Assembly: GCF_000143415.4 (NCBI RefSeq) | Contig: NW_003314261.1 | Location: 5,234,360-5,298,359, forward strand | Length of the DNA stretch: 64,000 bases | Direction: 5' to 3' | From: Selaginella moellendorffii | Lineage: Eukaryota > Plantae > Lycopodiophyta | Shown here: one piece after another, positions 8,761 through 62,500 of the stretch | Position numbering within the stretch: the stretch's first letter is position 1 | Layout of the letters: each line of letters begins with the position of its first letter | Program-made: the position numbers and the translations under genes | The notes under the pieces: generated by a model | What the model was told of the DNA's origin: nothing | The model's input: the letters and a program-made list of their open reading frames with translations, nothing else | Databases searched by the model: none

Positions 8761-8793
8761 AAGCGAAAACTCGTGCAAGATGGTAGATAGCTC

Positions 8794-10731: not shown

Positions 10732-12505
10732 TGTGAGACACAAAATCCCTAGGCCCCAAAGTGGAGCTGGAAGGGTGCCACGTGGTAGTGGCCAAAGCGA
10801 GAGCCAAACGAGCGTAACACGTTTGGACCAAAAGCTCCGACTTGAAAAGTCAAGAGCGGGAGTGGAACTCCCAACGAAGTGCTCGAGGAATGAGCACGAA
10901 GCGAGCAAAAGGCGAGGCTCCAAAAAGGGACCCAAAAGGACCAACACATGACACGTGGGAGTGTCCGAGATGGACTCGAGTTGGAGTCCGAAGTGGAGTC
11001 CGAGATGGACCCAAGTTGGAGTCCGAAATGGAGTCCGAGATGGACCCGAGATGGAGTCCGAGATGGAGTCCGAAGTGGAGTCCGAGGTGGACCCGAGATG
11101 GAACCGAGTTGGAGTCCGAAGTGGAGTCCGAGATGGAGTCCGAGATGGAGTCCGAGGTGGACCCGAGATGGACCCGAGTTGGAGTCCGAAGTGGAGTCCG
11201 AGATGGACCCGAGATGGAGTCCGAGATGGAGTCCGAGATGGAGTCCGAGGTGGACCCGAGATGGACCCGAAATAGAGTCCGAGATGGAGTCCGAGATGGA
11301 CCCGAGATGGAGTCCGAGATGGAGTCCGAGATGGAGTCCGAGATGGAGTCCGAGACCGGGACCGAGACCGAGACCGAGACCGAGATCGGGACCGAGACCG
11401 AGACCGAGGCCGAGGCCGAGACCGAGCCCGAGCCCGAGTCCGAGTCCGAATCCGAGTCCGAGTCCGAGTCCGAGTCCGAGTCCGAGTCCGAGTCCGAGTC
11501 CGGAGCCTGAGAGGGTGAAAGCCCAAAGCGTTCGTCTCCCAGACCCTGGGGGGTTTGGTGAGCTCCAAAAGTATAGTAGGGGGAGGACTGCAGTGGAGCC
11601 AGTTTGGCCAGGAAAGGCCAGTTTGGCCCAGGAAGGCCAGACCCAGTGTTGGGTGATGAACTGACCACTGGGAAGTCCAAGACTAGAGTGAATACGGACC
11701 GACAAGCGGGGTAGCTTGGTGAAGTGTTCAAGAGCCGGCTCTAGTTCCCCCGGGAGATCGACTGGCCGATGCTCCCAGTCCAAGTGTGGGTGGCACTACC
11801 TACTTGGATACCTGGTGTGGCTCAACGGAACCCGCTCTAAGCCCATGGCTAGAGCACCCAAGGGCAGAAGGTGAGGAGAGTACCCAGGTGGCTCGTGTAA
11901 GGCCACGGTGTTCCGAAATGTTGTCCCAAAGGCCCAGACTGTGGAAAGGAAGAGGAGCAGTCCTCTGGGGTAGTGACCAAGGACACAGTCACACAGTGAG
12001 GAAGTCCTAGAGGATAGTGGGACTTAGTGGTCGGGCCAGTGGGCCTCGATCCAGTGGCAATGTTGGCGAACACAGCCAAGGACAGAAAGGGACTTGGTGG
12101 GGACCGGAACAGAGATATTGGGGAAGGCTATTCCCCATGTCTGTAGGCATCCTAAGGATGTTAAGGAGTGGATCTGGGATGATCACTCATGGATGGATGA
12201 CCCAGTCTTTGAGGGACGGGATTGGAATGTAGGTGGTGTTGGACCACCAGTGTGACCGAGGTAAATGGGCATGGCCTTAGCGTAACGGGCCGATATGTCG
12301 GTGGTACCTTGGGGTGTCGATCATGGGATCGGACACGTGGAGCACTTGGACCAAGTGCTAAGGTTGAGTGGCATGGATGCCATTCTCGAGGCTAGCAAGC
12401 CCCAAGTCCTGAGTTGGGCTTATGGAGGTTGTGAATGAGACTCCTCCAAGTGGTCGGAGGTGTGGTTAAGTGACTGAAGTAGAATGGAAAAATTAGTCGC
12501 TTACA
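10732..12505 (+). repeat. 5' LTR of element C (1774 bp)
   Basis: TGTGAGAC...GTCGCTTACA; direct repeat of 16570-18337. Confidence 0.95.
10965..11501 (+). repeat. Compound minisatellite/microsatellite in the C LTR
   Basis: 12-mers GAGATGGAGTCC / GAAGTGGAGTCC and 11-mer GAGATGGACCC, grading into 6-mers GAGACC, GAGGCC, GAGCCC, GAGTCC. Confidence 0.95.
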
Positions 12506-16569: not shown

Positions 16570-18337
16570 TGTGAGACACAAAATCCCTAGGCCCCAAAGT
16601 GGAGCTGGAAGGGTGCCACGTGGTAGTGGCCAAAGCGAGAGCCAAACGAGCGTAACACGTTTGGACCAAAAGCTCCGACTTGAAAAGTCAAGAGCGGGAG
16701 TGGAACTCCCAACGAAGTGCTCGAGGAATGAGCACGAAGCGAGCAAAAGGCGAGGCTCCAAAAAGGGACCCAAAAGGACCAACACATGACACGTGGGAGT
16801 GTCCGAGGTGGACTCGAGTTGGAGTCCGAAGTGGAGTCCGAGATGGACCCAAGTTGGAGTCCAAAATGGAGTCCGAGATGGACCCGAGATGGAGTCCGAG
16901 ATGGAGTCCGAAGTGGAGTCCGAGGTGGACCCGAGATGGAACCGAGTTGGAGTCCGAAGTGGAGTCCGAGATGGAGTCCGAGATGGAGTCCGAGGTGGAC
17001 CCGAGATGGACCCGAGTTGGAGTCCGAAGTGGAGTCCGAGATGGACCCGAGATGGAGTCCGAGATGGAGTCCGAGATGGAGTCCGAGGTGGACCCGAGAT
17101 GGACCCGAAATAGAGTCCGAGATGGAGTCCGAGATGGACCCGAGATGGAGTCCGAGATGGAGTCCGAGATGGAGTCCGAGATGGAGTCCGAGACCGGGAC
17201 CGAGACCGAGACCGAGACCGAGATCGGGACCGAGACCGAGACCGAGGCCGAGGCCGAGACCGAGCCCGAGCCCGAGTCCGAGTCCGAATCCGAGTCCGAG
17301 TCCGAGTCCGAGTCCGAGTCCGAGTCCGAGTCCGGAGCCTGAGAGGGTGAAAGCCCAAAGCGTTCGTCTCCCAGACCCTGGGGGGTTTGGTGAGCTCCAA
17401 AAGTATAGTAGGGGGAGGACTGCAGTGGAGCCAGTTTGGCCAGGAAAGGCCAGTTTGGCCCAGGAAGGCCAGACCCAGTGTTGGGTGATGAACTGACCAC
17501 TGGGAAGTCCAAGACTAGAGTGAATACGGACCGACAAGCGGGGTAGCTTGGTGAAGTGTTCAAGAGCCGGCTCTAGTTCCCCCGGGAGATCGACTGGCCG
17601 ATGCTCCCAGTCCAAGTGTGGGTGGCACTACCTACTTGGATACCTGGTGTGGCTCAACGGAACCCGCTCTAAGCCCATGGCTAGAGCACCCAAGGGCAGA
17701 AGGTGAGGAGAGTACCCAGGTGGCTCGTGTAAGGCCACGGTGTTCCGAAATGTTGTCCCAAAGGCCCAGACTGTGGAAAGGAAGAGGAGCAGTCCTCTGG
17801 GGTAGTGACCAAGGACACAGTCACACAGTGAGGAAGTCCTAGAGGATAGTGGGACTTAGTGGTCGGGCCAGTGGGCCTCGATCCAGTGGCAATGTTGGCG
17901 AACACAGCCAAGGACAGAAAGGGACTTGGTGGGGACCGGAACAGAGATATTGGGGAAGGCTATTCCCCATGTCTGTAGGCATCCTAAGGATGTTAAGGAG
18001 TGGATCTGGGATGATCACTCATGGATGGATGACCCAATCTTTGAGGGACGGGATTGGAATGTAGGTGGTGTTGGACCACCAGTGTGACCGAGGTAAATGG
18101 GCATGGCCTTAGCGTAACGGGCCGATATGTCGATGGTACCTTGGGGTGTCGATCATGGGATCGGACACGTGGAGCACTTGGACCAAGTGCTAAGGTTGAG
18201 TGGCATGGATGCCATTCTCGGGGCTAGCAAGCCCCAAGTCCTGAGTTGGGCTTATGGAGGTTGTGAATGAGACTCCTCCAAGTGGTCGGAGGTGTGGTTA
18301 AGTGACTGAAGTAGAATGGAAAAATTAGTCGCTTACA
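16570..18337 (+). repeat. 3' LTR of element C (1768 bp)
   Basis: Differs from the 5' LTR by one GAGTCC unit and about five substitutions seen by eye. Confidence 0.95.
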
Positions 18338-42159: not shown

Positions 42160-43557
42160 GGAGTGGATCTCCTTTTCCTCTTGCAGCTAGCAGTCAAGCC
42201 CCACTATCAAATTCTATCTTCGCGTTGACACATTCGCTGCCGATTTCTCCAATTTCACTCTGGTCCTTCCTTCCACGCGACGGATCGATCGCACAAAGAG
42301 AAGAGAAGAAAATGGAAGAAGGAAGGGGAAGATGCAAAGCAAGTGGACTCAAAGCCTGGGCAATGACCTCTTCTTTTTCCTCTCCACGGCCATCATCGCG
42401 TGACGTGTCCTCATCCCGGGGCCGATGCCGGGCATATTCGCCACGCACACTCTCTCAGAAGCGCTGCCAGAAGCTGCCGCGAAGCTCGGGATGCTTCCAC
42501 AGAACCTTCCTCGGCCCGGGAGCATATGCTTGCTTTGCTCACGCGACGTAGAAGAATATGCTCTGGTAGAGGAGGAAATTTCAAAGGTCGTGTGTGTGGG
42601 CTCAATGCGAGACCTTTTACCATCTGCTAGCTTTTGTTTCGCAAGGCCACCATTTCCAGCGAAATTTCCTGTTTATCGAAACGTGCCAGGGTCCGTGGGG
42701 TCGATTTGGGTGGATGCTTCCTTGTCTTGCACGTGATTCCACGAAACATCACTCCAAAAACCATTGTCACGATTTGGTCCATCGATTGATCGATCTCGGC
42801 CAAAAAGCCTACGAGCTAAAGCTCCTACAGCAACAAAAAGACATGATTTTCCCAATGGCATCCGCCAAAACAACAGTGATCATGGAGAAATCCACTACAA
42901 ACTCAAGGGACATTGGGTTGGAGTTCCAATATCAAAGCAAAGTAAAGCTCCAAACTTTAGACACTTACCAACAGATTTGTTTTAATATTTCTTGGCCCGA
43001 TCGAAACGGCAGGTCGCTTTTATGTTTCCTTGTCTTCTTTTTTTTTTTTGTTCTTTCATTTTTGGCAGAACGAGCTCCCTGCCACGTACAGTCTCCGCCG
43101 TGTCGTCTCGGCTTGCTCTTCACACAATCTGCCGTTTCTGGAGCCGATCAGCTGATGATACGTTTCGTTGCGTGTTTGTGATTTATCCCAGGTTTTCATA
43201 GTGCAAAAGCAAACTTGCGCACTGTTTCCTGGAAGTGACAAAGTAGGAAAAGTCCACCTTTCACATTGGTGGACTCCAATGTAAATCGCTTTACTTATGA
43301 CTTCCACTCGCGAGTGGTCATTGATCCTCGCTTCAAGTTTAGGTTTCGTGTGTTATTCTGGGAGACGAATGGAACTGTACCTTCTCAAGGACACAAATTA
43401 ACAATTGCGCTAGACAGGGGTCGAACCTGTGACATTCTGCTCCGGAAACAGACGCTCTATCGACTGAGCTACAAGCGCTTTCCTTACAGTTTTATTTTAT
43501 ATTGGAATATGCGGCATCGAATCAATTTATTGACCCGGGAATTAGGATTCTTGAGGA

Positions 43558-45313
43558 ATGGTGGATCTGAGGCGATGGCGCCTCGAGGCGCTGCAGCAAA
43601 TGCGGCTTGCGCTGCCGATGATGGGTGTTAATCTCATGCAGTTCGCCATCCAGATCACGTCCGTGATGCTCGTCGGCCATCTCGGCGAGCTCCAGCTCTC
43701 GAGCGCCTCCATCGCGACATCGCTGTGCACGGTCACCGGCTACAGTCTCTTGGTGAGTCCCTGACGCAAGATTTCGAGGCAGAATTGAGCAGTGAAGCAT
43801 CCGGATCGTGGTCTCTTTGTAGCAAGGCCTTGCCACCGGCCTTGAGACCCTGTGCGGCCAGGCGTTTGGAGCCAAGCAATACCACAAGGTCGGCCTCTAC
43901 TTGTATCGAGCAGTGCTGGTTCTTCTCGCCGTCGCGATTCCAGTGGCAGTGCTATGGCTCAACATGGAACGTTTCCTCCTCGTCCTCCATCAGGCTCCAG
44001 ACATATCGTCCAGCGCTGGAATCTACGCGCGATGGCTCGTCCCGGGGCTCTTCGCATTTGGCTTCCTCCAGCCACTCATCAAGTTTCTCCAAGCGCAGAG
44101 CTTCGTGCTTCCGATGTTCTTGTGCTCGTCGGTGACTTTGGTGGTCCACGTTTCGATCTGCTGGGTGTTCATATACAAGGTTGGTATGGGAAACGCTGGA
44201 GCAGCACTGGCGACGAGTGTTTCCAACTGGATCAACGTCTTCTTCCTCGCCGGAGTGGCGCTGCTCACTCCCCGGTGTCGCAAGTGTTTGCCAGAGTTAT
44301 CCATGGAGGTTTTCGAGCATGTTTTCGAATTTTTGAAGTTGGCAGTGCCTTCTACGCTCATGTTCTGGTAAGTATTTTCTTGTTTCTTTTATTCGTTTAA
44401 CTCTGCATTGTTCCCAGCTTGGAGTGGTGGTCGTTTGAGTCCCTCGTTTTGCTCTCAGGCGTTCTTCCCAATCCCAAGCTTGAGACGTCTGTGTTCTCCA
44501 TCATGTCAGTAAAAAACTTTTCCTTCCTGTTAGCTCACTTTTCTTTTCCAGGCTAAACATCATCAACTTCTGCTACATGGTTCCTTATGGTATCAGTGCA
44601 GCAGCAAGGTATTCAGCGATTTGCTCAGTTACTCTCTTTGGCAAACTTTCGATCTCTGCAGTACTCGCATTTCCAACGAGCTCGGTGCCGGGCATCCATT
44701 TGAAGCTCGGCTCTCGCAGGGCGTTTCTTTCGGCCTGGCTGCCATTGACGCAGTGTTTGTGTCAACCCTCTTGTTTTGCCTCCGTGACGTTCTTGGCCGG
44801 GCTTTCAGCAATGAGGCAGAAGTGGTCGGCCATGTTTCGCGAATGATTCCAATTCTTGCTGCAATGACCGTCATGGATGCATTTGCCGGAGTTGTATCGG
44901 GTAACTCGAACTTTTTTTTTGTTTTGTTTTATGTTTCTAGCTAAACAATTGTTTTGCAAGGTTCTGCTAGAGGGTGTGGTTGGCAGATGCTTGCAACAAT
45001 TGCAAACTTGGGAGCCTTTTACGTTGTTGGTTTGCCTGTAGGATGTATCCTAGCATTTGTCGTTGGTCTCGGTGGGAAGGTAACTCAATCTTTGGCCTTG
45101 GGACTGATGCCTGTTGCATTACACAGGGACTTTTGATTGGAGTTCTCTCGGGAGTGTCAACGCAAGCTGCAGTTCTGTCTGTAATAGCCCTCTCCACAAA
45201 CTGGGCAAAGCAGGTGGACACTCTCACGAGTGGTTTGCTTACCAAATGTGATTATACAGGCACAAGCAGCGATGATTCGTGTGGACTCCGAGACAATCCC
45301 ACTCCTTTGCTAA
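43558..45313 (+). CDS. MATE (DTX) efflux transporter
   Basis: LALPM...[75 protein letters not shown] introns. Confidence 0.9.
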
Positions 45314-45319
45314 GTTTCT

Positions 45320-45566
45320 AGCTTTGTCTTTTGGCCATTTTGAAAAGTCGTCTTTGATAGCTTTGCCTTTGAGTTTGTCGCTTTGGCGCTGGGACTGTCG
45401 CTGCTGCCAGCTCTTCCACCACTGCCGCCAGCTCTTCCGCCTCCTCCCTGGCTGCCGCTGTGTCCAGCTTCTGCATTCCTTGCCATGATCTGCGCACAAA
45501 CTATAAGTGCATCACGAGCAGGGATGAACTTGGAAAAAATCTCAAGTCTCTTGACATGGATCCCAC
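45320..45566 (-). pseudogene. 3' fragment of family-A trypsin-fold/Gly-tail gene
   Basis: GIHVKRLEIFSKFIPARDALIVCAQIMARNAE...GGGGRAGG matches 55414-55600; the 5' part is missing. Confidence 0.75.
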
Positions 45567-45569
45567 CAT

Positions 45570-46740
45570 CCATTCTTGTTGCAGTCAAGGCGTTTGGCGT
45601 CAAAGCGACTGTCCAGGTTAGTAGTTTCGCCTTTTTCTCTCTCTCTCTTGAGCTTTCGTTCTTTCTTTACGACTTGCATTGCAAGCATTCGTCACCGCAC
45701 GCGTTACATTTTGACATGACACTCCTGCGTAGCTTTTGCGTTTGTCCAGGTTTGCAACAAAGGATCTTTACCTTTTTACGGACTCTTGTCAGGGCGACAG
45801 GCCTCAAGAAGAAAGAGCTCATGGGGAAGTCTGCCCATACTTGAGGCTGGTCCTCGGTGAAGGACCGTTTGCCAATCCAGAATGGAACGAAACCTTTCAT
45901 GTTCTGGATCCAGAATGTCTTACGAGGTACGTGGTTCTACTACAAGCATTTCAACGAACTTAAATGGGCTTCCACGCGGACCCATGCTTATGCAAGATCA
46001 TGGTGTCTCTAATGGAAAAGGTTTGTTTCTTTTTCTTTTCTCCCATTCATGTGGATTTTGGTTTGAAACTTCTCGGTGGCGACTTAATGGCAATTCCATG
46101 GCTTATGGATCTTTGTACTGACAAAGCTGACTTCGCAGGACCTGATCAAGGATTACTTGTGGCCCAGAACAATGGAACCAACGTCCTAGACGATCCGAGG
46201 TAAGACTTAACTCCTGGAAGTCATTCGTATACTCATGAATGCCTTTCAGCCACCTGTTGGAATGCTGGAAGTGAAGGCTGTCAGGGCGACTGGCCTCAGG
46301 GAAAAAGACTGACTCATATGCAAGGCTGGCCCGTGTTTGCCAAGAAGAAAACGACCGTGAAAATGAACAAGAAGAAGACAAGGTTCTATCTATAAGCACA
46401 ATAGCAACCTTAAATTGGCTTGAAGACAATTGAAGCCTCGTGACTCACACAGCGTCGAAAAAGCTCCCGAAGGACGTGGTTTGCCTGTCCATGGTGTCGA
46501 AGACTTGGAAAGCAAGCATCACAAGAAACCGTACGTGAGGCTCGCATTTAGCAAAGGAAACCAAGGTAAGTAGTGTCCCGTTGATTTGGTGTTTTATCCT
46601 TCTCTGGTTTGTTCGCGCGTTTCAGGCTATAAAGAAGATCCTGGAGTTCCAGTACCTTGTAGCGGAGCACCAGTGGGCGAGTGGAAAGCAATGGGAAATG
46701 GATACCACCTGCTTGTCTATATGCTGTTTTGATAGTGTTG
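45570..46740 (+). pseudogene. Synaptotagmin (plant SYT1-like) pseudogene fragments
   Basis: VAVKAFGVKATVQV, VSLMEK/HVDFGLKLLGGDLMAIP, VRATGLKKKELMGKS, NPEWNETF, VHGVEDLESKHH. Frameshifted and internally duplicated. Confidence 0.8.
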
Positions 46741-46769
46741 CGGAGCCCAACTTGAAGCATGAGACTGAT

Positions 46770-47420
46770 GTTCATTTTCATGGTCGTTTTCTTCTTGACA
46801 AACGGTCCTTCACGAATGACCAGCCTCGCGTATGGGTCAGACTTCCCCACGAGGTCCTCCTTCCCGTCGCTTTGACAACCTTGACTTCCTGCATTTCAAC
46901 AGCCCTCTGAGAGGAGTATATGTATGACTTTTGTCTGTCTTCCAGTAGTCTATGACGTTAATTTCCGGGCCACAAGTACATTTCTTATTCCTTGATCAGG
47001 TGAGCTGTGTCAGTCAGTGCAAAGGTGAAAGTTGTTCCATGTAAAACCTGGACAAACGCACAAGGCATTAAGTCGCCACCGGGAAGTCTCAAACCAAAAT
47101 CTAAAGCAAACCTTTTCCATTAAAGAGACTATGATCTAGAATGCGCCAACAACGGGCTCCAACGACGCGTGTGGTGGCAAATACTTGCAAGTCTACAACC
47201 TGAAGAAAAAACTAAAAAACCAGACGCTCGACGAGGAGAAAGAAAAAGCGCTGTAACTACCAACCTGGACAGTCGCTCTGAGACCAAACGCCTTGATAGC
47301 AGCAAGAATATTTCTGGATAATCATCTCCTTTGATGCCTGCGAGAAGAAGTTGTATACAAGAACAAAGAAAAAACGTTACCTACAAACGTCGGCGACAGC
47401 GCGCAATGTCAAGGCCTCGA
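46770..47420 (-). pseudogene. Synaptotagmin pseudogene fragment (inverted)
   Basis: GKSDPYARL...KKKTT C2A remnants and SMP-region remnants on the minus strand. Confidence 0.75.
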
Positions 47421-47572: not shown

Positions 47573-48642
47573 ATGGCTTCGAGCGGTGAGATAGCGAGGC
47601 GCTATGGAAGATTTGAGGCGGATGCCGATTTTCGTGATGCTCGAGCAGCGCTAGGGCGGCTGTTCATCCAGAATGGCTCGCTCTCTTCTGTTACAACCAT
47701 CGCTACCGTGGTTATGGTAGCACCAAGGTGAAAGATTCGTGTTTTGGTGTTGGAAGTTTCTCCTTTCTCGCTCTCGCTTCACGGTGTTGTGTCACTTGCT
47801 CCGCTCGAAGGCTACGACCTCCGTCGCTTGCAATGGCTGGTTCACTATCCCACTCAAAGGGAGATAAGGGAGGCGAGTTTCATCGACGTGGACCGTGCGT
47901 GCGAGGTAGCAATGCTCGAGATCGAGAAGAACTACACGGAGTTTCCGCTGGAGATACCCTTTCTACGGAGTAGCGGGGAGCTCTTACGCCTGGGGTCTCG
48001 TGTCCATTTCCTGGGCTATGTTGAGGGGGTGGACAGGGAGTATGATGCATGCAGAGGAGGAGGCTCGAAGAAGGCGGAGACTGAAAAGATCCCGGCTTTC
48101 CATGATGTTCTCACGGTGGGAACTACACTCCCAGGAGGGTTTTGTGTAGGTAAGAGTAGTTTGGGCTGTCATTGATAGTTCCTATCATTAACAGTTTCTT
48201 TCTAGCTTCTTATTGTGGAGACAATCGCGGAGGCGTCATTTTCACCATCGATCCCCTCATGAAGCCCACGCTCCAGCTGATTGGGTTTCATATCAACAAC
48301 ATTGGGATGTTATGTAAATTCATCCCCGAGCGCCTTGCGTTCAATGGAGGAGGAGGTGGTGGCAGCGGTGGAAGAGGAGGTGGTGGCGGCGGCGACCGCG
48401 GACGCGGTGGCCATAGGGGAGGCAAAGGTAGAGCCGTGCCGCTGCCGCGAGCGCTGCCGCGCGGAGGTGGTGGCACCGGTGGCAGCGGACGGGGTGGCCG
48501 TAGGGGTAGAGCTGTGCCGCTGCCGCAAGCGCTTCCGCGTGGAGGTGGTGGCAGCGGAGGTGGAGACCAAGGAAGCGGCAGTGGCACCGGCAGTGGCACC
48601 CGAGGAGGCAACAAAGCCAAAGGCAAAGAAAAAGTGGTGTGA
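47573..48642 (+). CDS. Orphan family A copy 1: trypsin-like fold (predicted inactive) + Gly/RGG tail; possibly pseudogene
   Basis: ASFIDVDRACEVAMLEI...PFLRSSGELLRLGSRVHFLGY...GDNRGGVIF...LIGFH echoes the HtrA/DegP peptidase pattern. Paralogue at 54712. The first-intron acceptor appears deleted. Confidence 0.55.
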
Positions 48643-48841
48643 AAACTGTGCGAAGGGAAACCATTGCGACTCTTGTGAAAAGAGCCAAGGCCTAATCCTA
48701 ATTCCCGCAAACTCCCTCGCTCTTGCTGCACAACGGGCCGCTTCTCGATATCCACCCTCGGCAGGCCATCACAGACTCGCAAGTTTTCAAGAAATCTACA
48801 AGTTTGCCACGGAGAATTTGAAAAAACAAAGAAAAATACGC

Positions 48842-50206
48842 TTATGCGTGCCTGCGCCAATGGATGACGTTTTGCTCGTTGGAGCTTGAAGGCTCAAACT
48901 CTGTCAAGAAAACAAAAGAAAAACTTAGAGAGTTCAATCCACTGATCTTCTTACCTTTTAGAGGATGAGCTTTCGTCCAATCGTACCAAACAGTCGTCAA
49001 ACCATCAATGTCCAAACACGCGACATAAACGACAGCCTTGCGGTGCACGAATCCAGCCTCGAGAGCTACAGTTAGACAGTTTCAGTTAGACAGTTTCAAT
49101 CGCCAAGCATCCAAACCTTTCCCAAAGTCGGGATCCTCCTTGACTCGGTTTTGGAACTGGTCGCGGATGGCAGTCTCGTCGAGCCTCCTCTCTCCATTCT
49201 TCTTCTTCTTCTTCGTCGGTCGAGTATCACGAGCCGGGATCTCCTCGAATTCCACCACCACTCCGCCAAGATGTCCTGCATCGTCAAGGACAGGAGCACC
49301 CACCTCCACCGTGCTCTCCACCGGAAGCATCACCATGTGGTAAGGCTCGAACTGATAAATTGGAAGGCTTGGGTCCTCGATGAAGATGCCCGCCACGCAC
49401 TTGACGTCCCCGGACTGTGGGTCGCGCTTCCAGCTGTAGGCATGATCCGACTTGCAAATCGAGTCATTCCAGTTGATGCAATAGTTGAAGCTGACAGGTT
49501 TGGCCGGCGTCAGGATGGCGATCTCGACCTCTTCCTCGTAAGTCACCACGCACTCGTACTCCAGTGGTGGATCCGAGAACACCAGCACGTACTTGCCAGA
49601 GGTGGAGCTACGGTTACAGCACACGGCGGCGGTGAAGCAAGAGCCATCGGGCTTCACCAAGGCGGCCAGGCCCTTGTAGTTGTCATCGCTCGGCTCGTCG
49701 TCACCCTCCACAAAGTGCAAGCGAGCCACCATCTTGGAGACCCGGGACTGCATCACGTTGCAAACTTGCTCTGGTTTCGTGACGGTGAGCTCCAGCTCCT
49801 TGACATACGACCACAGGCCCTCGACGTTGCTCCGGTACGCCTCCAACTGCCTCGACCTCGCAACCTCGGCTCTTTGCTTCTTGGCCACGAGATTCTCCTC
49901 GTCGCGCTGCCGGATGTGATCCTGGACGGCGGGGTGATCAGCAGAGCGGCGTCGGCCCGTGATGACGAGCGCTTGCTCGTGGCTGCTACCGTCACCCAGG
50001 TCGGGCTGGTCCTGGAGCAACGCGGCAATGGCGTCAAGGGAGAGCACCGAGTTGCCGTCGGCACCTGGGACTAGAGCGCAGTTGCCAATGCGGAGGGAGT
50101 CCGGGTCCAGGCCCCAGTGACGAGCGATGGAGCTTACCATGAGTTTGGAGCCTATGAGTGGGAAGCGCAGCGCCTCGTCACCCCGCTTCACCCACACCAC
50201 CGCCAT
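48842..50206 (-). CDS. Orphan family B copy 1: Ubl-like header + coiled coil + trypsin-like fold (predicted inactive); introns 49066-49116, 48901-48954
   Basis: 374-aa ORF conserved with copy 2. VVWVKRG...GSSHEQALVITG header; LVKPDGSCFTAA, EIAIL, VGAPVLDDAGHLGGVV. Spliced C-terminal exons are conserved in both copies. Confidence 0.75.
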
Positions 50207-51365
50207 AGCTCCGCTTGACCTAATACGGAATACGTAGAAAAAAGCGTTTCGACTCTCTTCCCATGAAGATTTTCCTTTTCAGATGCTATCAGTTATAAGT
50301 TTTTACACAACAATGGATGCTGCTCTACATCTACGTGCTCTACTCCCCGGACTGCAGCACAATGTCATCTTTGGTACCGTTCCGGCCCCAGTCGTCCGAC
50401 CGGAGTGGGGGGTGCTCACTCGTCGCACGGCATGCCGCTCGAAGGCGTGTTTGCGATTCTCAGTTTCGCTTCGTCCTCTGTTTGGATTCGAGCTCCACCA
50501 TTTGTTCCAGACGCTGCTCCAGACGCTGCTGTACAAGTAATAGCTCGCTGGTGCATCATCACAACTGATCACTGGTGGCAGCGTTTTGCCTGCGTTTTGC
50601 TGAAACTTTTGCGGCAGGCAGGGTCAGTGCTCTCCCGGTGAATCCTCAGTTCCACGCTGGTGGAGGCGTTGAGAGCGGCGCTCTTGTCGCCAAGTACTGA
50701 CAAGAGGCTGTGTGAGCACACGGGATGTGCGGTGGCTTCCAATCTCCCGCAAGAGGGCGGCCCTGTTAAGCGGCGCTGGCGAGCTTCCCCTGGAACAAGT
50801 GCCGCCTCCTTCCCCTCGTCCCGTGCAGCATCGCCAGGGATCTGGGCATCCGCTGGGCGATCCACGCTCGCGTCCTTCACACCACAGCGTGGTTCAATCC
50901 TCGCCTTCAATGCGGTTGTGCGCGGTCGTAGTGAGAAAGAGCGCGTTCAAAGATACAAGAGGAGTGGAGTTTTTATAAGTGGTGGGCGGGGCGCTTGATT
51001 GATGCTCGAGATCAAGATGCGTCGGAGTTGCAAGAGCCATAGAAACTTTACCTTGGGAATTTAGCTTGGGAAGAGAAAAAAAAAAAAGATGCAAGATGCG
51101 AGTTGCTATTCCTCTTCCTTCTCCCTCTCGAAATCTTTGCAAAAACGAAAGAACAAGCAAAGCATGAATATCCCAAAAACGATTCTTTGCAAGAAGATGC
51201 CGAATATTCCTTTTCGGCGCGAACAAAAACTTCCAGTTCTCCAAGCTTTGGATTCAGCTCCAAAACACTCCTATCTTATACTAGCTAAAGATTTTACGTA
51301 GCCTGAATGGAGGTCTTCCTCGTTGATAGATCTCCAAAAACCTTGACAGTGCTACACCTCTTACT

Positions 51366-52732
51366 TCAAGGCTCATCAATCTCAAATTCTGTGTCAAATA
51401 AAAACCACAACTTTCGGAGTCAAATTCACGTATTCCAGAATGAATCTTACCTTCGATGGGATGAGTTGTCATCCAATCCTTCCAAAGAGTCGTCAGACCA
51501 GTCTCGACACACGCCACATAAACGGCTGCTTTCCGGCGCTCAAGGGCAGCACCGAGCGCTGAGGACATCAAACAGTTACAGTTAAGTTAAAACTGCCAAG
51601 AAGAAGGGAGGCCGGAAACCAAACCTTTCGCGAAGTCAGGATCCCTGCTGACCACCTCGTTGCAGAAGTCACGGATGCTAATCATATCGAACTTCCTCTG
51701 CCCATTGTTCTTCTTGGACCGAGTATCGCGAGCCGGGATCTCCTCGAATTCCACCACAATTCCGCCAAGATTTCCCCGGCTATCAAGTACTGGAGCACCA
51801 ACCTCCACCATCTCGAACGGAAGCATCACCATGCGGTAAGGCTCGCACTCCCCACTGCTAAGGCTTCGATCCTCAAGGAAGATGCCCGACACGCACTTGA
51901 TGTCCCCGGACTCTGGGTCGCGCTTCCAGCTATAGGGACTACCCGACTTGCAGATCCAGCCATCCCAGTTGATGCAATAGTTGAAGCTGACGCCAGGTTC
52001 GATCGGCGTCAGGACAGCGATCGGATCCTTGAAAGACACCATGCACTCGTACTGCAGTGCTGGATCCGAGAACACCAGGATGTACCTGCCAGAGGTGGAG
52101 CTACAGTCGCAGCAAGCGGCGGCGGTGAAGCAAGATCCATCGGGTTTCACCAAGGCGGCCATCCCCCTGTAGTTGTCGTCGCTCGGCTCGTCATCGCCCT
52201 CCACAAAGTGCAAGCGCGCCACCATCTTGGAGACCCTGGACTGCAGCAGTTCGCGAGCTTGCTCTGGCCTCAAGCGCCTAAACGGGCCCCCGCCCTCGAG
52301 CTCCTTGACGTACGACCACAGGTTTTCGACACTGCTGTGGAATGCCTTGAGCTGCCTCGACTCTGCGGTCTCTCTCCTTTGCTTCTTCCTTGCCACCAGA
52401 TCCTCCTCGTCTCGCTGCCGGATGAGATCCTGGACGGCGGGGTGATCGCAAGCCGAGCACGCATTCCTGGTGGCAGAGCAGCGGCGGCCAGTGACGAGGA
52501 GTGCTTGGTCGTAGCTGCTACCATCGCCCAACTCGGGGAGCAAGGCTACCATGGCGTCAAGAGAGAGCACCGAGTTGCCGTCGGCGTCTGGGACTAGAGC
52601 GCAGTCGCCGATGCGGAGGGAGTCCGGGTCCAGGCCCCAGTGACGAGCGATGGAGCTCACCATCATCTTGGCGCCGTCCTGGAGTGGGAAGCACAGCGCC
52701 TCGTCCCCCCGCTTCACCCACACCACCGCCAT
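51366..52732 (-). CDS. Orphan family B copy 2; introns 51559-51624, 51389-51450
   Basis: Intact ORF paralogous to 48842-50206 with the same splice sites; ends ...THPIEEFEIDEP*. Confidence 0.75.
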
Positions 52733-52829
52733 AGCTCCGCTTTGACCTAATACGGTACAAAAATTAAAGTTTCTTAACAAAGTGTGCCGTTAATTAACCA
52801 CAAATCAGTTTGGCGTGTTGTCTCAATTT

Positions 52830-54330
52830 TGCGTCGATCAAGGCCAAACTGACACTCAGGTGGTGCATTTCCCATTGCTTTCCACTCGCAAGCGGTCCTC
52901 CACTGGTGGCTCCGCTAAAACTCTTGATCCCATCCAGGATCTTCTTTATAGCCTGAAACGCGCGAACAAACCAGAGAAAGATAAAACACCAAACCAACGG
53001 GACTCTACTGACCTTGGTTTCCTTTGCTAAATGCGAGCCTCACGTACGGGTTCGTGTGATGCTTGCTTTCCAAGTCTTCGACACCATGGACAGGCAAACC
53101 ATATCCTTCGGGAGCTTTATAAGCTTCGATTGAAGCGTCTTGATCCTCCTTGGACACTTTGTGGGTCACGAGGCTTCGATCATTGGGCAATCAGTCTTGT
53201 TGATCTGCAAGCCAATTTAAGTTCGCTACTGTGCTTATAGAACCACGTACCTTTTCAAACATAACAGCCTGTGAAAGGTTTCGTTCTTCTTGTTGATTTT
53301 CGCGGTCGTTTTCTTCTTGGCAAACACGAACCGGGTCAGTCATTTTTCTTGAGGCCAGTCGCCCTGACAACCTTCACTTCCAGCATTCCAACACCGCGCT
53401 GAGAGGCATTCATGAGTATGCTTATGACTTCCACGAGTTAAGTCTTACCTCGGATTGTCTATGACGTTGATGTCCATTGTTCTGGGCCACAAGTACAGCT
53501 GTGCCAGTATAAAGGGCCATACAAACCTGGACAAACGCATAAAGCCCTGGAATTGCCATTAAGTCGCCAGAAGTTTCAAACCAAAATCCACATGAATGAT
53601 AGGCTATGTCAAAAGAGGAAGCAAACCTTTCCATTATAGACACCATGATCTTGCAAAAGCATGGAAATTAAGTTCGTCAGAATGCTTGTAGTAGAGCCAC
53701 GTACCTTTTTCCAGTCAGAACATGAAAGGTTTCGTTCCATTCTGGATTGAGACTGTTCAATTTCACGGTCGTTTTCTTCTTGGCCAGACAAGACTTCCCC
53801 ATGAGGTCTTTCTTCTTGAGGCCCATCGCCCTGACAACCTTGACTTCCAGCATTCCAACAGGCTTCTTTACCGCTCTGAGAGGTATTTATATGTCTTGCA
53901 CGAGTTATGTCTCTATGACGTTGATTTCTGGGCCACAAGTACATTTGTGAAACTTTATCCTTGATCAGGTTGTGCGAAATCCTTGTCAGTAAAAACGTAA
54001 AGATCTTTTGTTGCAAACCTGGACAAACGCATAATCCCATTTAAGTCGCCAGCCACCGAGAAGTTTCGTGAGGATGGCAGGATGCTTGCAATGCAAGTCT
54101 ACAACATAAAGAGAGAATGATGGAAGAGATAAACAAAAAGGCGAAACTACTAACCTGGACAGTCGCTCCGCAACCAAACGCCTTGACAGCAACAAGAACT
54201 CTTTGGCACATTTCGGAGACAGCTCGCGTCTCCTTCTCACATCCTTGATGCCTGCCAAAAAAAGTCGTCAAAAACAGAGTACAAGAAAAAAGATAAAAAC
54301 ATTAGCTACACAGTGTCAAGGCCTTCGCCG
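52830..54330 (-). pseudogene. Synaptotagmin pseudogene (SMP-C2A-C2B remnants, internally duplicated)
   Basis: VAVKAFG, DLMAIPGLYAFVQ, IKDKVSQMYLWP, KAPEG, VHGVEDLESKHHTNPYVRL, DPGWDQEF. Many frameshifts. Confidence 0.8.
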
Positions 54331-54711
54331 CGGATTCATCGATACATGGTTTGGCAGTGTCACGAATGAAGCCTGCATTTGCAAGTAAGGCATAGAAAAA
54401 TGCGACCATGATCCCAGGAAAGGAATCACGGAAAGATTGGGACTTGAGGAAATCTCTGGCACAGCGACTTCATATGAAGCTCCTGCAAGGTCGGATTGTG
54501 CCAAGCGATCAGCGCATGAGAATACTCTAGCTACATTCCTGGCGAGAATCCCTACCTTGACATCCACGGGCGTGAAATGGAAGTAGGCGATCCCGACAAC
54601 CCAGCACGGTGCTGATCAGCCCCATCGCCGCGCGTAAATCACCTCTCCATAAAAAACCATTTCTTGTTCTATAAACCCTTAAACCCTAGCAACGGCCTTC
54701 AGCAAGCAACG

Positions 54712-55923
54712 ATGGCTTTGGAAGTCGCGGAGGTGGGCTTTGGAGCTGCGCGAGAAGTGCTCGGGCGCTTGTACGTCGACGACAGCTCCGGCGACAGCTC
54801 CGGCGACAGCTCCGACAACAGCTCCGGCGACAGCTCCGACAACAGCTCCGTCTCGCTCTCGTCTGTCAATACCATAGCCACCGTGGTTATGGTCTGGAAA
54901 AGGTGAAAGCTTTGTGCCTTTGTGCTAGAAAACTCTCTCCTCTTGTCGCTCTCGATGCAGCCACGGCATTGTGTCCCTCGCGCCGCTCAAAAACTACGAC
55001 CTTGGTGGCCTGGACTGGCTGGTTCTCTTCCCCACTCGGGGCGAGAAGAGGGCCGCGTCTTTCATGGCCGTGGACCATGAGCGCGACATAGCGATGCTCA
55101 AAATCGAGGGCGGGGCGTTACCTTTTCTCCGTTCAAGCAAGGAGCGCCTGTCACTAGGCCGCCAGTTTCATTTTCTTGGCTACGTTGAAGACGTGGACAA
55201 GGCTTCTTACAAAAAAGGGGATGGCAAAGACGAAACCAACCAGATCCCATCTTTCCAGGATCAAGTGACGGTGGCAACTACTTTACCGGGAGGCTTCTAT
55301 GCAGGTGTTTTGTTCTTGCCATTTCAGCCCCGTTTTGACATTTTTTTCTTTCAGGAGCTTATGCTAGCGATGATCGCGGGGGTGCGATCTTTTCGATCGC
55401 ACCCCTCGAGCTGGTGGGGATCCATGTCAAGAGACTTGGGATGTTTTCCAAGTTCATCCCTGCTCGTGATGCACTTACAGTTTGTGCGCTGATCATTAAA
55501 AGGAATGCAGAAGAAGGAAACAGCGACAGCCAAGGAGGAGGCGGTGGCAGCACCGGTGGTGGCGGAAGAGCTGGCGGCAGCGGCAGCGGAGGAGACGACC
55601 AGGGAGGAGGCGGAAGAGCTGGCGGCAGTGGTGGAAGAGCTGGCAGCAGGGACAGTGGAAGAGGAGGAGGCGCTAGCACCAGCGGTGGTAGAGCTGGTGG
55701 CGGAAGAGCTCGCAGCAGCGGAGGAGGCGCTGGCACCAGCGGTAGTAGAGCTGGAAGAGCTCGCGGCAGCGGAGGAGGCGCTGGCACCAGCGGTGGTAGA
55801 GCTGGTGGCAATGGCGGAAGAGGTCGCGGCAGCGGCAGTGGAGGAGGCGACCAAGGTGGCACCAGCGGTGGCAGCCGCCAAAGCGACAAAGTCAAAGGCA
55901 AAGCTATCAAAGAGGTGTGTTAA
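54712..55923 (+). CDS. Orphan family A copy 2: trypsin-like fold (predicted inactive) + long Gly/Arg/Ser repeat tail; 2 introns
   Basis: TATA (54670) and telo-box (AAACCCTA, 54681) upstream. ASFMAVDHERDIAMLKIEGGALPFLRSSKERLSLGRQFHFLGY...SDDRGGAIF...LVGIH. Intact GT-AG introns at ~54903-54960 and ~55305-55354. Confidence 0.7.
54778..54850 (+). repeat. 12-nt in-frame tandem repeat (GACAGCTCCGGC; DSSG/NSSG units)
   Basis: About six copies; absent from the paralogue at 47573. Confidence 0.85.
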
Positions 55924-56054
55924 GGAAAGCAAACTCTGTCTTTTTCTTTTACAAACTTGCCAAAACACAAAGCTAGATTTTCTCCACTGCTCACCCTGCA
56001 TCGCTGCGATGCCGATGGTGATACCCAGGCCGAGTCCAGGCCCCAGCTTGAAAC

Positions 56055-57760
56055 TTAGCAAAGGAGTGCGATTGTCTCGGAGTCCACACGAATCATCGCT
56101 GCTTGTGCCTGTATAATCACATTTGGTAAGCAAACCACTCGTGAGAGTGTCCACCTGCTTTGCCCAGTTTGTGGAGAGGGCTATTACAGACAGAACTGCA
56201 GCTTGTGTTGACACTCCTGAGAGAACTCCAATCAGAAGTCCCTGTGTAATGCAACAGACATCAATCCCAAGGCCAAAGATTGAGCTACCTTCCCACCGAG
56301 ACCAACGACAAATGCTAGGATACACCCTACAGGCAAACCAACAACGTAAAAGGCTCCCAAGTTTGCAATTGTTGCAAGCATCTGCCAACCACACCCTCTA
56401 GCAGAACCTTGCAAAACAATTGTTTAGCTAGAAACATAAAACAGAAGAAAAGAAAAGTTCGAGTTACCCGATACAACTCCGGCAAATGCATCCATGACGG
56501 TCATTGCAGCAAGAATTGGAATCATTCGCGAAACATGGCCAACCACTTCTGCCTCATTGCTGAAAGCCCGGCCAAGAACGTCACGGAGGCAAAACAGGAG
56601 GGTTGACACGAACACTGCGTCAATGACAGTCAGGCCGAAAGAAACGCCCTGCGAGAGCCGAGCTTCAAATGGATGCCCGGCACCGAGCTCGTTGGAAATC
56701 CGAGTACTGCAGAGATCGAAAGGTTGCCAAAGAGAGTAACTGAGAAAATCGCTGAATACCTTTCTGCTGCACTGATACCATAAGGAACCATGTAGCAGAA
56801 GTTGATGATGTTTAGCCTGGAAAAGGAAAGTGAGCTTACAGGAAGGAAAAGATTTTTACTGACATGATGGAGAACACGGACGTCTCAAGCTTGGGATTGG
56901 GAAGAACGCCTGAGAGCAAAACGAGGGACTCAAACGACCACCACTCCAAGCTGGGAACAATGCAGAGTTCAACGAATAAAAGAAACAAAAAAATACTTAC
57001 CAGAACATGAGCGTAGAAGGCACTGCCAATTCAAAAAGTCGAAAACATGCTCGAAAACCTCCATGGATAACTCTGGCAAACACTTGAGCAGCGCCACTCC
57101 GGCGAGGAAGAAGACGTTGATCCAGTTGGAAACACTCGTCGCCAGTGCTGCTCCAGCGTTTCCCATCCCAACCTTGTATATGAGCACCCAGCAGATCGAA
57201 AAGTGGACCACCAAAGTCACCGACGAGCACAAGAACATCAGAAGCACGAAGCTCCACGCTTGGAGAAACTTGATGAGTGGCTGGAGGAAGCAAAATGCGA
57301 AGAGCCCCTGGACGAGCCATCGCGCGTATATTCCAGCGCTGGACGATATATCTGGAGCCTGATGGAGCACGAGGAGGATGTTGAGCCATAGCACTGCCAC
57401 TGGAATAGCGACGGCGAGAAGAACCAGCACTGCTCGATACAAGTAGAGGCCGACCTTGTGGTACTCAACGCCTGGCCGCACAGGGTCTCAAGGCTGGTGG
57501 CAACAAAGAGACCACGATCCGGATGCTTTACTGCTCAATTCTGCGTCGAAATCTTGCGTCAGGGACTCACCAAGAGACTGTAGCCGGTGACCGTGCACAG
57601 CGATGTCGCGATGGAGGCGCTGGAGAGCTGGAGCTCGCCGAGATGGCCGACGAGCATAACGGACGTGATCTGGATGGCGAACTGCATGAGCTTGACGCCC
57701 ATCATCGGCAGCGCAAGCCGCATTTGCTGCAGCGCCTCGAGGCGCCATCGCCTCCTCAAG
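56055..57760 (-). pseudogene. MATE transporter pseudogene (inverted copy of 43558-45313)
   Basis: High identity to the intact gene, but the ATG is deleted, the intron-1 acceptor is deleted, there are several small deletions, and a frameshift near 57030. Confidence 0.88.
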
Positions 57761-58239
57761 AACCTTAATTCCCGGGTCAATAAAAAGATTCGATGCCGCA
57801 TATTCTAGTATAAAATAAAACTGTAAGTAAAGCGTTTGTAGCTCAGAGCAGGTCGCCATTGTTTCTTGATTTGAATTTGTGCCCTAAAACAAGGATCAAT
57901 TAAAGCGATTTGAAAGTTTGGTAGATACGAAAGAGATTGAGTGAGACGGGCAGGGAGCTTGTGCTGCCAATAACACAAAAGGAGCAAATCTGTTGATAAG
58001 AGTCTAAAGTTTGAAGCACTGCCAACTTTTTGGAACTCCAATCCAATGTCCTGTAAGTTTGTAAAGGATTTCTCCATTATCACTGTTGTTTTGTTAGATG
58101 CCATTGGGAAAGTCATGTCTTTTTGTTGTTGTAAGAGCTTTAGCTCGTAGGCTTTTTGGGTGAAATTGATTAATAAATCTAAGTGTAGCAAGGGATTTTG
58201 GACTGGAATCTCCTTTACCTATTCTTCAGAGCTGTTAGT

Positions 58240-59559: not shown

Positions 59560-62500
59560 TGTTCTTAATCCTTTTGTACAAAGTGTTTCAACCACTACAC
59601 ATGCACAATTTTTGGAGGATTGGCTTGTTGGATGTTATGTTGAACCTCATAAACTTGTGGTCCAACTTGCCGTAACACTTAATATAGTCCTTTCCACTAA
59701 GAAAGGAGCCCCCTTAGGTACCATAAGATAGGGAAAACGGACTAACACTAAATTATCCATTTTGTACTCTGTAGGTGGATGATGATGGGAGTTGTAGTGC
59801 TATTGTTATCCCATTTGTATGTGGTTTAGGTGTTTGGTAGACTCTATTTGGACAAGTGGAAGAATGCTCGTCAAATATTGATCCCACGATTTAGCATCAG
59901 CAGATCGTGGCAATGTGAGACACAAAATCCCTAGGCCCCAAAGTGGAGCCGGAAAGGGTGCCACGTGGTAGTGGCCGAAGCAAAAGCCAAACAAGCATAA
60001 CACGTTTGGACTAAAAGCTCCAACTTGGAAGGTCGAGAGCGGGAGTGGAACTCTCAACAAAGTGCTCGAGGAGCGAGCACGAGGCAACCAATAAGCAAGG
60101 CTCCAAAAGGGGACCCAAAAAGGACCAACACATGACACATGGAAGTGTCCGAGATGGAGTTTGAGGTGGACCCGAGTTGGAGTCCGAGATGGACCTGAAG
60201 TGGAGTCCGAGATGGAGTCTGATATGGAGTCCAAGATGGAGTCCGAGATGGACCCGAGATGGAGTCTGATATGGAGTCCGAGATGGAGTCCGAGATGGAT
60301 CCGAGATGGAGTCCGAGATGGACCGAGATGGAGTCCGAGATGGACCCGAGATGGAGTCCGAGATGGACCCCAGATGGAGTCCGAGATGGACCTGAGATGA
60401 AGTCCGAGATGGACCCGAGATGGAGTCCGAGATGGAACCAAGACCGGGACTGAGACCAAGACCGAGATCGAGACCGAGTCCGAGTTTGAGTCCGAATCCG
60501 GGACCGAGACCGAGTCCGAGTCCGAGTCCGGATACCAAGACAGGGAGCCGGGACCGAGACCAAGGCCAAGGCCAAGACCGAGCCCGAGTCCGAGTCCGAG
60601 TCTGAGTCCGAGTCCGAGTCCGAGTCCGAGTCCGAGTCCGAGTTCAAGTTCAAGTCTAAGAGGGTGAAAGCCCAAAGCGTTCGTCTCCCAGACCCTTGGG
60701 GGTCGGGGGGGTTCCAAAAGTATAGTAGGGAGAGTGTGGGGGTTGGAGCCTAGTGGAGCCAGTTTGGCCAGGAAAGGCCAGTTTGGCCCAAGAAGGCCAG
60801 ACCCAGTGTTGAGTGATGAGCTGCCCACTGGGAAGTCCAAGACTAGAGTGAACACGGACCAACAAGTGGGGTAGCTTGGTGAAGTGTTCAAGAGCCGGCT
60901 CTAGTTCCCCCGGGAGATCGACTGGCCGATGCTCCTAGTCCAAGTGTGGGTGGCACTACCTACTTGGATACCAGGCGTGGCTCAACGGAACCTCGCTCTA
61001 AGCCCATGGCTAGAGCACCCAAGGGTGGAAGGAGGGGAGAGTACCTAGGTGGCTCGCGTAAGGCCACGGTGTTCCGAAATGTTGTCCCAAAGGCCCAGAC
61101 TGTGGAAAGGAAGAGGAGCAGTCCTCTGGGGTAGTGACCAAGGACACAGTCATGTGGTGAGGAAGTCCCAGAGGACCGTGGGACTTAGTGGTCGGGCCTG
61201 TGGGCCTTGATCCAGTGGTAGTGTTGGCAAACACGGCCAGGGGCAGAAAGGGACTTAATGGGGACTGACAGAGGGATATTGGGGAAGGCTATTCCCCTTG
61301 TCAGTGGGCATCCTAAGGATGCTAAGGAGTGGATCTGAGATGACCACTCACGGACAGTTTGCCTAGTCTTGGAGAGCCAAGACTGTGATGCAAGTGATAT
61401 TGGACTACCAGTGTGGCAAAGGTGATTGGGCATGGCCTTAGCGTAACAGGCTGCCATGTCGATGGTACCTTTGAGTGTCGGTCTTGGGATCGGACACGTG
61501 GAGCACTTGGACCAAGTGCAAATGTTGAGTGGCATGGATGCCATTCTCGGGGCTACCAAGTCCCAAGTCTTGAATTGGACTTATGGAGGTTGTGAATGAG
61601 ACTCCTCCAAGTGGTCGGAGGTGTGGTTAAGTGACTAAAGTAGAATGGAAAAATTAGTCGCTCACAGGCAATTGCGAAGGTAAACTAGGAGTTTATATAG
61701 TGAAGCACTAATAAAACTCTGCACCCCTGTAACATATGCATACTGAAGAGATGGCAAATAACCATCTCAATCCAAATGCTGAAAGCTTACGTATTTCGCG
61801 ATCATCTCTTTGAACTTCGAACGAGTTGTTTCACCAAACCGTCTGATTATAGATGATAAGCACTTGTGAAAGTGTGGTGTATCCCTAACCGAGATGTCAA
61901 AACATGAAATGCCTCAACTATAAATATGGGACTATTATCCAAAAGAATCTGCTCTGAACAAGAATGCTTGAACATCACTCGATTGAGGAGGAAATATCCA
62001 AAAGTAATTGTAAAGGCACTAGTAAGAGCACCAATTTCCACCCAACAAATCAAGTAGTCAGAAGCAATAATAACATACTCATTGCCAACAATTGATTGTG
62101 GAAAAGGTCCCATAAGATCAAACGCCACTAACTCAAATAGACGGGAAACTGTAATTGACTCCAACTGTCCTTTCGCAACACAAGGGGGAGTATTATGAGC
62201 TTGACACCAAATGCAGCTACGTACATGTTGGATAACATCACGTCCCATCTCCAGTCAATAGAAAGACCTGCGTAGTTACCTAGAACAGGAAAATCATAGT
62301 AGGCATGGAGAAACCATGGAATAAAGATTGAAGGCACCACTAGCTCTAAATGATCATCAAGATATGTCCCCACAAAATAAAGAAAGCCATATTCAAGGCA
62401 ATATCGTGAATGTAAATGCCTAAATGGCAAGTTATCAGTAAGTGATGCAAGATTCTCAAACCCTTCTCAAAGCCTTCGAATCCATGGCTCAATCTTTTGA

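Follow-up and report, generated by a model that had tools for sequence, protein, structure and literature searches.

Two families of probably inactive chymotrypsin/HtrA-fold proteins in a duplication-prone locus of Selaginella moellendorffii

Why do two duplicated families of protease-like genes lie interleaved at one locus of a lycophyte genome, and do they belong together? The question is raised by a stretch of 64,000 nucleotides from Selaginella moellendorffii (NCBI RefSeq assembly GCF_000143415.4, contig NW_003314261.1, positions 5,234,360 to 5,298,359), hereafter the window, which agrees with scaffold GL377565.1 at every base, window position x being position 5234359 + x of the record. 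An initial annotation, made from the letters alone, had described two families here, A and B, as trypsin-fold pseudo-peptidases that cannot be aligned with each other by eye, from what it rightly took to be a non-seed plant, and had proposed that they act as a pair. Both families were confirmed at their positions by open reading frame (ORF) analysis, and all motifs quoted for them were found again (FTAAVCC/FTAAACC and VEVGAPVLD..G.LGG in B, ERDIAMLKI and DDRGG/DNRGG in A). Our analysis suggests that the locus is probably a duplication-prone patch in which two distinct families of catalytically dead chymotrypsin/HtrA-fold proteins, each restricted to this lineage, lie together. The genes concerned are the following.

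47573-48642, plus strand: gene A1, from its ORF and sequence inspection
47573-47727, 47780-48149 and 48206-48642, plus strand: exon-1-like part, exon 2 and exon 3 of A1, from sequence inspection
48842-50206, minus strand: gene B1, from its ORF and a database protein
50206-49117, 49065-48955 and 48900-48842, minus strand: exons of B1, ends mapped from protein P0001
51366-52732, minus strand: gene B2, from its ORF and RNA contigs
52732-51625, 51558-51451 and 51388-51366, minus strand: exons of B2, from RNA contigs
54712-55923, plus strand: gene A2, with canonical introns
54712-54902, 54961-55304 and 55355-55923, plus strand: exons of A2, the sole apparently intact A copy

Both B1 and B2 are genuine genes, transcribed, spliced and under moderate purifying selection. 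They encode proteins of 419 amino acids (P0001, SELMODRAFT_437614) and 412 amino acids (P0003, LOC9642648) that are 70% identical, and both frames are open over more than 410 codons, in agreement with their description as two intact copies. A 374-residue ORF within B1 (49082-50206, minus strand) has 99% identity to SELMODRAFT_437614, and the two B1 introns (49066-49116, 51 nucleotides, and 48901-48954, 54 nucleotides), which have GT..AG ends, are homologous to those of B2. To assess expression, Logan contigs from four runs, one per study, were aligned over 49541-55540. The 5' part of B1 is matched by RNA contigs with 0 mismatches over 49714-50117 in the four runs, and all of B2 is covered. Since both B2 introns (51559-51624, 66 nucleotides, and 51389-51450, 62 nucleotides; GT..AG on the minus strand) are skipped in 4/4 runs, these runs are of RNA origin and bear out the B2 gene model (P0003). 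Pairwise comparison of B1, B2 and a copy at a second locus (L002, scaffold GL377577.1) gave a ratio of nonsynonymous to synonymous substitution rates (dN/dS) of about 0.5 overall at a dS of 0.2-0.34, with about 0.3 in the N-terminal header and 0.4-0.7 in the protease-like domain.

The fold of the B protein was addressed by structure prediction. An AlphaFold2 model of B1 built with four close paralogues was unusable, with a predicted local distance difference test score (pLDDT) of 30; a rerun with 18 family members reached a pLDDT of 77 and a predicted template modelling score of 0.63. In this model, an N-terminal domain is followed by a long helix and then by an HtrA-like double barrel with a basic loop resembling a nuclear localisation signal (NLS), and two parts of the model are placed on the gene as follows.

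49952-50206, minus strand: N-terminal domain of B1, residues 1-85, from the AlphaFold2 model and conservation
48980-49786, minus strand: predicted dead HtrA-like protease domain of B1, residues ~141-392, spanning intron 1

When the B1 model was compared with the PDB using Foldseek, the best 50 matches were all HtrA, DegS, AlgW, DegP, HtrA1 or Rv3671c, with E values of 3.7e-9 to 1.6e-7 and a probability of 1.00; they cover residues ~141-392, and the parts outside this range are barely probed by such whole-protein searches. A shape search of the ESM Atlas with the same model returned S1C proteases, and a language-model search with B returned Trypsin_2 at 0.94. The modelled domain has the two six-stranded beta-barrels that define the PA clan fold. 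Pfam gave no match for B, whole or in pieces, at E values up to 10. There was no Pfam match to a PDZ domain either, and the C-terminus of the B1 model consists of helices and the last barrel strand. Before that strand, a Lys/Arg-rich loop (residues 326-340, TKKKKKNGERR, pLDDT below 50) and three short helices are inserted; the loop is found in most B subfamilies. Residues conserved in the protease part across the family are G179..L183..G188-x-C190-x-T192...C196 and G303-x-P305-V306...G311...G315.

By motif register, the triad positions of B1 are occupied by V195 instead of His (49622-49624), E228 instead of Asp (49523-49525) and V302 instead of Ser (49301-49303). Across the family the His position reads V/V/A/S/G/R/A/K/K and the Ser position V/R/T/C/L/P, and the His-Asp-Ser triad of S1/S1C peptidases occurs in none of the 18 members. 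As these positions vary across the whole family, B appears to be non-catalytic, and to have been so since before its subfamilies split. B is thus predicted to be a chymotrypsin/HtrA double-barrel protein that lacks the catalytic triad, which bears out the trypsin fold first proposed for it from motifs. Two other candidates were discarded: a PDB profile search with B matched the YEATS4 coiled coil by chance, and a reading of the PVxDxxGxLxGVV motif as a CBS domain (PDB, E 0.07) is excluded by the double-barrel model. The segment GAPVLDxxGxLGGVVV (B1 residues 303-320, ~49247-49300) does resemble a CBS-domain signature and could mislead motif-based annotation.

Family A is very probably also of trypsin type, with Arg at the nucleophile position. 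The evidence comes from sequence comparison. In A2, whose annotated product has 381 amino acids, both introns (54903-54960, 58 nucleotides, and 55305-55354, 50 nucleotides) are canonical GT..AG introns, and the first joins exon 1 to ..WK-S-HGIVSLAP. The His so formed (54962-54964) stands 41 residues before the Asp (55085-55087) of RDIAML(KI), a normal His-Asp spacing for the fold, and ~80 further residues lead to DDRGGAIF...LVGIH, with Arg (55375-55377) at the Ser position; a Gly/Arg-rich C-terminal tail of ~130 residues follows the trypsin-like domain. A1 has HGVV, so that a His opens exon 2 in both A1 and A2, and the A-like sequence of the L002 locus (A3) has Ala there. Asp is kept in A2 and replaced by Glu in A1 and A3, and the nucleophile position is Arg in all three (DNRGG in A1, DDRGG in A2, EDRGG in A3). 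Catalytic His and Ser had been considered absent from every copy of both families; this is the case for B, and for the Ser of A, but because the A2 splice junction puts the His at normal spacing it probably does not hold for the His of A1 and A2. Pfam Trypsin_2 (PF13365) matched A2 exon 2 with an E value of 0.004 (0.004-0.006) and 18.4 bits, the gathering cut-off being 27.6, and A1 and A exon 3 had no Pfam match at E values up to 10. A profile of exon 2 from A1, A2 and A3 found DegP-like proteases and MucD as its five best PDB matches (E 0.04-0.16), aligned in register on the Asp motif ..D-I/V-A-x-L-K-I-E..LP, and an ESM feature search with A gave Trypsin_2 at 0.95 with 177 features shared. 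The trypsin/HtrA motif order claimed for both families is backed by model and structure matches in B; in A, order and spacing fit and the matches are sub-threshold.

At this locus, A seems to be mostly decaying, with one intact-looking copy that has no RNA contig, a second whose splice site is broken and a third that is a mere fragment. A1, formerly taken for an intact copy, is probably disabled: the AG acceptor of its first intron is lost and an in-frame TGA (47729-47731) follows exon 1. The GenBank model comprises just 190 amino acids from an internal ATG. Its exon 2 is 54% identical to that of A2, with Glu replacing the Asp (47903) and Arg replacing the Ser (48226). In A3, exon 1 contains a stop and exon 2 a frameshift. 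No RNA contig matched A2 over 54741-55540 in the four runs that cover B1 and B2; the aligned span began at 49541, which leaves A1 outside. The largest share of the words of 47573-55923 held by any run was 0.32, about what the B1 and B2 transcripts would account for by themselves. Expression was seen for B1 and B2 and not over A2. A low-depth contig of one run does lie just upstream of A2, at 54341-54740; it has a minus-strand GT..AG intron (54482-54554) and resembles an unannotated transcript, or the remnant of one, that runs on the minus strand and ends close to the start of A2. The dN/dS between A1 and A2 is 0.35-0.40 at a dS of ~0.9, which indicates constraint on A during most of its past. 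With about 0.5 for B, the ratio is below 1 in both families, which, like the outcome for the fold, favours real genes.

These observations bear on the view that the whole cluster is non-functional debris, namely pseudogenes whose frames are open by chance. The broken A1, A3 and A fragment, the missing RNA contig over A2 in four runs and the many duplicated fragments of the region would fit such a view. It is contradicted by B1 and B2, for which four independent studies show transcription and correct splicing and which have intact frames of more than 410 codons, by dN/dS values of 0.3-0.5, and by the conservation of fold-defining residues among subfamilies that are just 25-33% identical. As an account of the whole cluster it is very improbable; it is refuted for B and stands for A.

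Are A and B then one module? The initial annotation saw in them a co-evolving functional pair, such as a decoy and its sensor, a protease-mimic defence locus or a toxin and its antidote, that spreads as a two-gene unit. In favour of a pair, the copies are interleaved, A1 and B1 are convergent with 199 nucleotides between their stop codons (about 200 had been estimated), both families are apparently dead protease folds, and a second A-like/B-like locus exists: at L002, A3 lies 1.5 kb upstream of the B-like gene P0002. However, the window and this locus have a C2/SMP gene neighbour in common and are 85% identical in nucleotide sequence over B, and L002 therefore is a copy of the same segment; its A and B genes are in tandem, as opposed to the convergent A1 and B1, and its A copy carries the stop and the frameshift. 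Moreover, seven further loci of the B family (L003-L009) had no A-like sequence up to 10 kb away by tBLASTn (E up to 1); they comprise two B2-type genes, the closest relatives (P0021 and P0020, at L008 and L009), and five genes of distant subfamilies (L003-L007). Linkage of A and B across the genome, suggested as a check, thus fails for the B family at large. The lost splice acceptor of A1, and the lack of RNA contigs over A2 where B1 and B2 have them, likewise argue against a pair. Neither independent co-occurrence nor maintenance and expression of both partners, which would mark a two-gene module, was found; a paired A/B module is not supported, and we give it only a slim chance. Profile-profile comparison of the A exon alignments with the B domain gave no signal (probability below 1%), so that no homology between A and B is detectable in their sequences, in line with the earlier remark that they cannot be aligned by eye. 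Concerning P0002 (L002 10001-11338), both 3' introns are in frame and stop-free, and the unspliced gene is one ORF of 445 amino acids.

B had been regarded as an orphan family of two copies. It is in fact part of an old family with at least seven diverged subfamilies on different scaffolds, 25-33% identical to B1, and is now present at no fewer than nine loci in this one lycophyte, all members being annotated just as hypothetical protein. A word search with B found four proteins, all from S. moellendorffii; HMMER, run on 1.84 billion cluster representatives with a profile of these four sequences, gave seven clusters (E 6e-252 to 5e-06), whose members all bear S. moellendorffii accessions, and no relative outside this species, oomycetes and fungi included. 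Only one further S. moellendorffii fragment came from a word search repeated with a profile of 18 sequences. For A, scans with back-translated patterns found no match in bacterial or archaeal genomes or in viral contigs. In the searches made, neither A nor B has detectable relatives beyond S. moellendorffii. One B2-type gene, P0021, lies on the same scaffold 26.9 kb past the window end, and the genes beside the other B loci (L003-L009) are ordinary, unrelated plant genes. P0009 (L007 6234-9800) is located directly downstream of a multiple-C2-domain transmembrane (MCTP-like) gene, and C2-domain genes also flank B genes in the window and at L002, a recurring adjacency that is probably coincidence.

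The dispersal of the copies, together with ESM feature neighbours that include viral 3C, NS3 and S39-type protease clusters, could point to the protease of a viral or mobile-element polyprotein, endogenised and inactivated after capture, as the ancestor of B. Against this origin, cellular HtrA/Deg proteases provide the best matches and the largest number of them, short spliceosomal introns occur at similar 3' positions in the genes, the flanks hold ordinary plant genes without annotated viral or transposon neighbours, and the viral-contig scan, which concerned A only, had no match. We consider such an origin highly improbable.

The N-terminal header of B (residues 1-85) had been read as a ubiquitin-like (Ubl) domain of Crinkler/RHS type. 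In the AlphaFold2 model the B1 header has a pLDDT of 81-88, with strands at residues 3-8 and 11-18, a helix at 24-31, short strands at ~39-56, a helix at 57-63 and a strand at 80-83, i.e. the beta-beta-alpha-beta-beta-alpha-beta order of the beta-grasp. No other part of the family is as well conserved: the header has 40-51% identity between subfamilies as compared to 25-33% for the whole protein, and W5, G71-D72-G73 and G84 are conserved family-wide. Ten B headers searched against Pfam at E values up to 10 matched no relevant family, neither ubiquitin-like nor Crinkler, and no solved Ubl structure was matched by sequence at E values up to 10. A Ubl-like, beta-grasp-like header on B is thus plausible from the order of elements in the model, which supports the first half of the proposal in part; a Crinkler/RHS-type header is unsupported. 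Crinkler-RHS-type (CR) proteins combine a Ubl header with variable C-terminal domains, trypsin peptidases among them, and are present in land plants (PMC5289972; PMC12957317), and the N-termini of the oomycete Crinklers (CRN) are defined by the motifs LxLFLAK and HVLVxxP (PMC5289972), both of which are absent from the B header alignment.

B could accordingly be a set of plant-resident CR proteins, a Ubl header joined to a trypsin-type 'toxin' domain and kept for inter-organismal conflict or immunity. The similar architecture and the occurrence of CR proteins in land plants (PMC5289972; PMC12957317) speak for this, as do the multigene family with its conserved header and more variable protease-like part and the NLS-like basic loop. 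It is opposed by the lack of a Pfam match for ten headers and of any LxLFLAK or HVLVxxP-type motif, by a peptidase domain that is apparently dead in every member and hence no enzymatic toxin, and by the HMMER result without relatives in oomycetes, fungi or any other organism. On balance we regard B as unlikely to be of CR type. A more speculative proposal, which we hold to be slightly less likely still, sees B as a lycophyte-specific combination of a Ubl header with an invariant last-strand Gly followed by basic residues (ITG-R/K-R), a helix and a peptide-binding dead HtrA domain, a plant-resident, non-enzymatic Crinkler-RHS offshoot whose members would serve immunity or protein quality control as adaptors or decoys in the nucleus. 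If true, B could deliver or sequester clients via the Ubl domain, or bait pathogen effectors that target HtrA-type proteases.

How A and B came to lie side by side is indicated by the layout of the locus, whose remaining features are listed here.

42785-45564, no strand assigned: left arm of an inverted segmental duplication, with a MATE gene and the A fragment
43558-45313, plus strand: MATE gene of the left arm, with a MatE Pfam match on the annotated product
45310-45603, minus strand: 3' fragment of an A gene (ORF) within the inverted repeat, 81% identical to A2 exon 3 at 45469-45564
45981-47313, strand not stated: C2-domain gene debris, by similarity to the SMP_LBD/C2 gene of L002
52846-54067, strand not stated: C2-domain gene debris, by similarity to the same gene
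55417-58174, no strand assigned: right arm of the inverted duplication, with the 3' part of A2 and a MATE gene
56327-57748, minus strand: MATE gene of the right arm

B1 and B2 form a tandem repeat with a unit of ~2.5 kb. The arms of the inverted duplication are complementary at 88-99% (96-97% in the main blocks), and the A fragment in the left arm encodes the end of the protease-like domain and a short Gly-rich tail. The locus grew via tandem and inverted block duplication, as anticipated from the sequence. Several further observations concern the neighbourhood. The annotated MATE products of the two arms are unequal, 460 and 352 amino acids, and one copy may be damaged. The two stretches of C2-domain debris are 67-74% similar in nucleotide sequence to the SMP_LBD/C2 (synaptotagmin-like) gene of L002, and GenBank joins the second of them with B2 in one 683-residue model (L001 5798-8841). 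This fusion is probably wrong, because RNA contigs leave 52741-53740 without cover. At 53741-53940, a single RNA contig with a depth of 972 matches only a piece of 150-200 nucleotides before it enters unlike sequence, and is probably the transcript of a highly expressed, intact C2-gene paralogue elsewhere in the genome. A dispersed repeat of ~0.8 kb occurs in three copies (10732-11558, 16570-17390 and 59914-60703; 83-85% identical to L008:1-779), and 8785-10216 (1.4 kb) is 87% identical to L008:6315-7781; the window neighbourhood and the B2-type locus 27 kb downstream thus have repeats in common.

Taken together, we favour two separate families of inactive chymotrypsin/HtrA-fold proteins brought together by duplication. 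The B proteins would act as non-catalytic intracellular, probably nuclear, binders or scaffolds, a nuclear role being possible because of the basic NLS-like loop. The retained protease cleft may hold a peptide ligand and its surroundings may be diversifying, and oligomerisation or some conserved interaction would be the task of header and helix. A would have come to lie beside B by block duplication of the segment and not by joint function, and block duplication with a decaying A partner would explain two dead-protease families side by side. Several points weigh against this account. The fold of A relies on sub-threshold sequence matches and a language-model score, and the beta-grasp assignment of the B1 header on the order of secondary-structure elements in a whole-protein model. 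The binding, scaffold and nuclear roles of B are derived from fold, basic loop and conservation. Contigs cannot prove A silent, as low-level or condition-specific expression is missed by them, and with an A1/A2 dN/dS of 0.35-0.4, A2 may still function. The restriction to S. moellendorffii depends on the lycophyte genomes in the databases.

Among known systems, the closest to both families are the proteases of the HtrA/DegP/DegS/plant Deg group (MEROPS S1C, PA clan). B1 has the same motif order, with 33 residues from V195 to E228 and 74 from E228 to V302; the corresponding triad spacings of DegP are 30 and 75. Downstream of its nucleophile position, B has also kept the G-x-P-V and G-x-L-x-G-V-V segment, and A exon 2 aligns with DegP in register around the Asp motif. 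In contrast to these proteases, no B member has a His-Asp-Ser triad, A carries Arg at the Ser position, and neither family reaches the Pfam Trypsin_2 threshold. HtrA proteins have one or more C-terminal PDZ domains, whereas A and B are without PDZ domain, signal peptide or transit peptide; instead, B adds the beta-grasp-like header, the long helix and the basic helical insert, and A the Gly/Arg-rich tail.

With CR and CRN proteins, B shares a small beta-rich N-terminal header followed by a trypsin-fold domain, and a multigene family in which the header is conserved and the C-terminal part more variable. It differs from them in having no curated header-family match, neither of the two CRN motifs, relatives in one plant species only and a header fold predicted in a whole-protein model; the C-terminal domain of CR effectors and toxins is enzymatic, but the B triad is missing in every member. 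FAM111A and FAM111B of animals join Ubl domains to a trypsin-like protease that is active and accompanied by PCNA- and DNA-binding elements, while B is an inactive plant protein without detectable sequence relation to them. The architecture of B is thus reminiscent of CR proteins and of FAM111, and B is a member of neither; no protein known to us has a beta-grasp-like header together with a long helix and a dead HtrA domain.

That dead proteases come to serve as binders is a pattern seen repeatedly. Lineage-specific families of dead S1 paralogues include the scabies-mite SMIPPs, the HGF beta chain, protein Z and UmbA of the umbrella toxins, all of them S1A-type proteins that animals or bacteria secrete; B, by contrast, would be an intracellular, HtrA-like plant protein of another domain architecture. 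We infer that B stands beside these dead S1-fold families that have been reused for binding. To our knowledge, few such cases are known from plants, and the B family, being expressed, constrained and expanded, offers a tractable one for asking what a plant gains from inactive HtrA folds.

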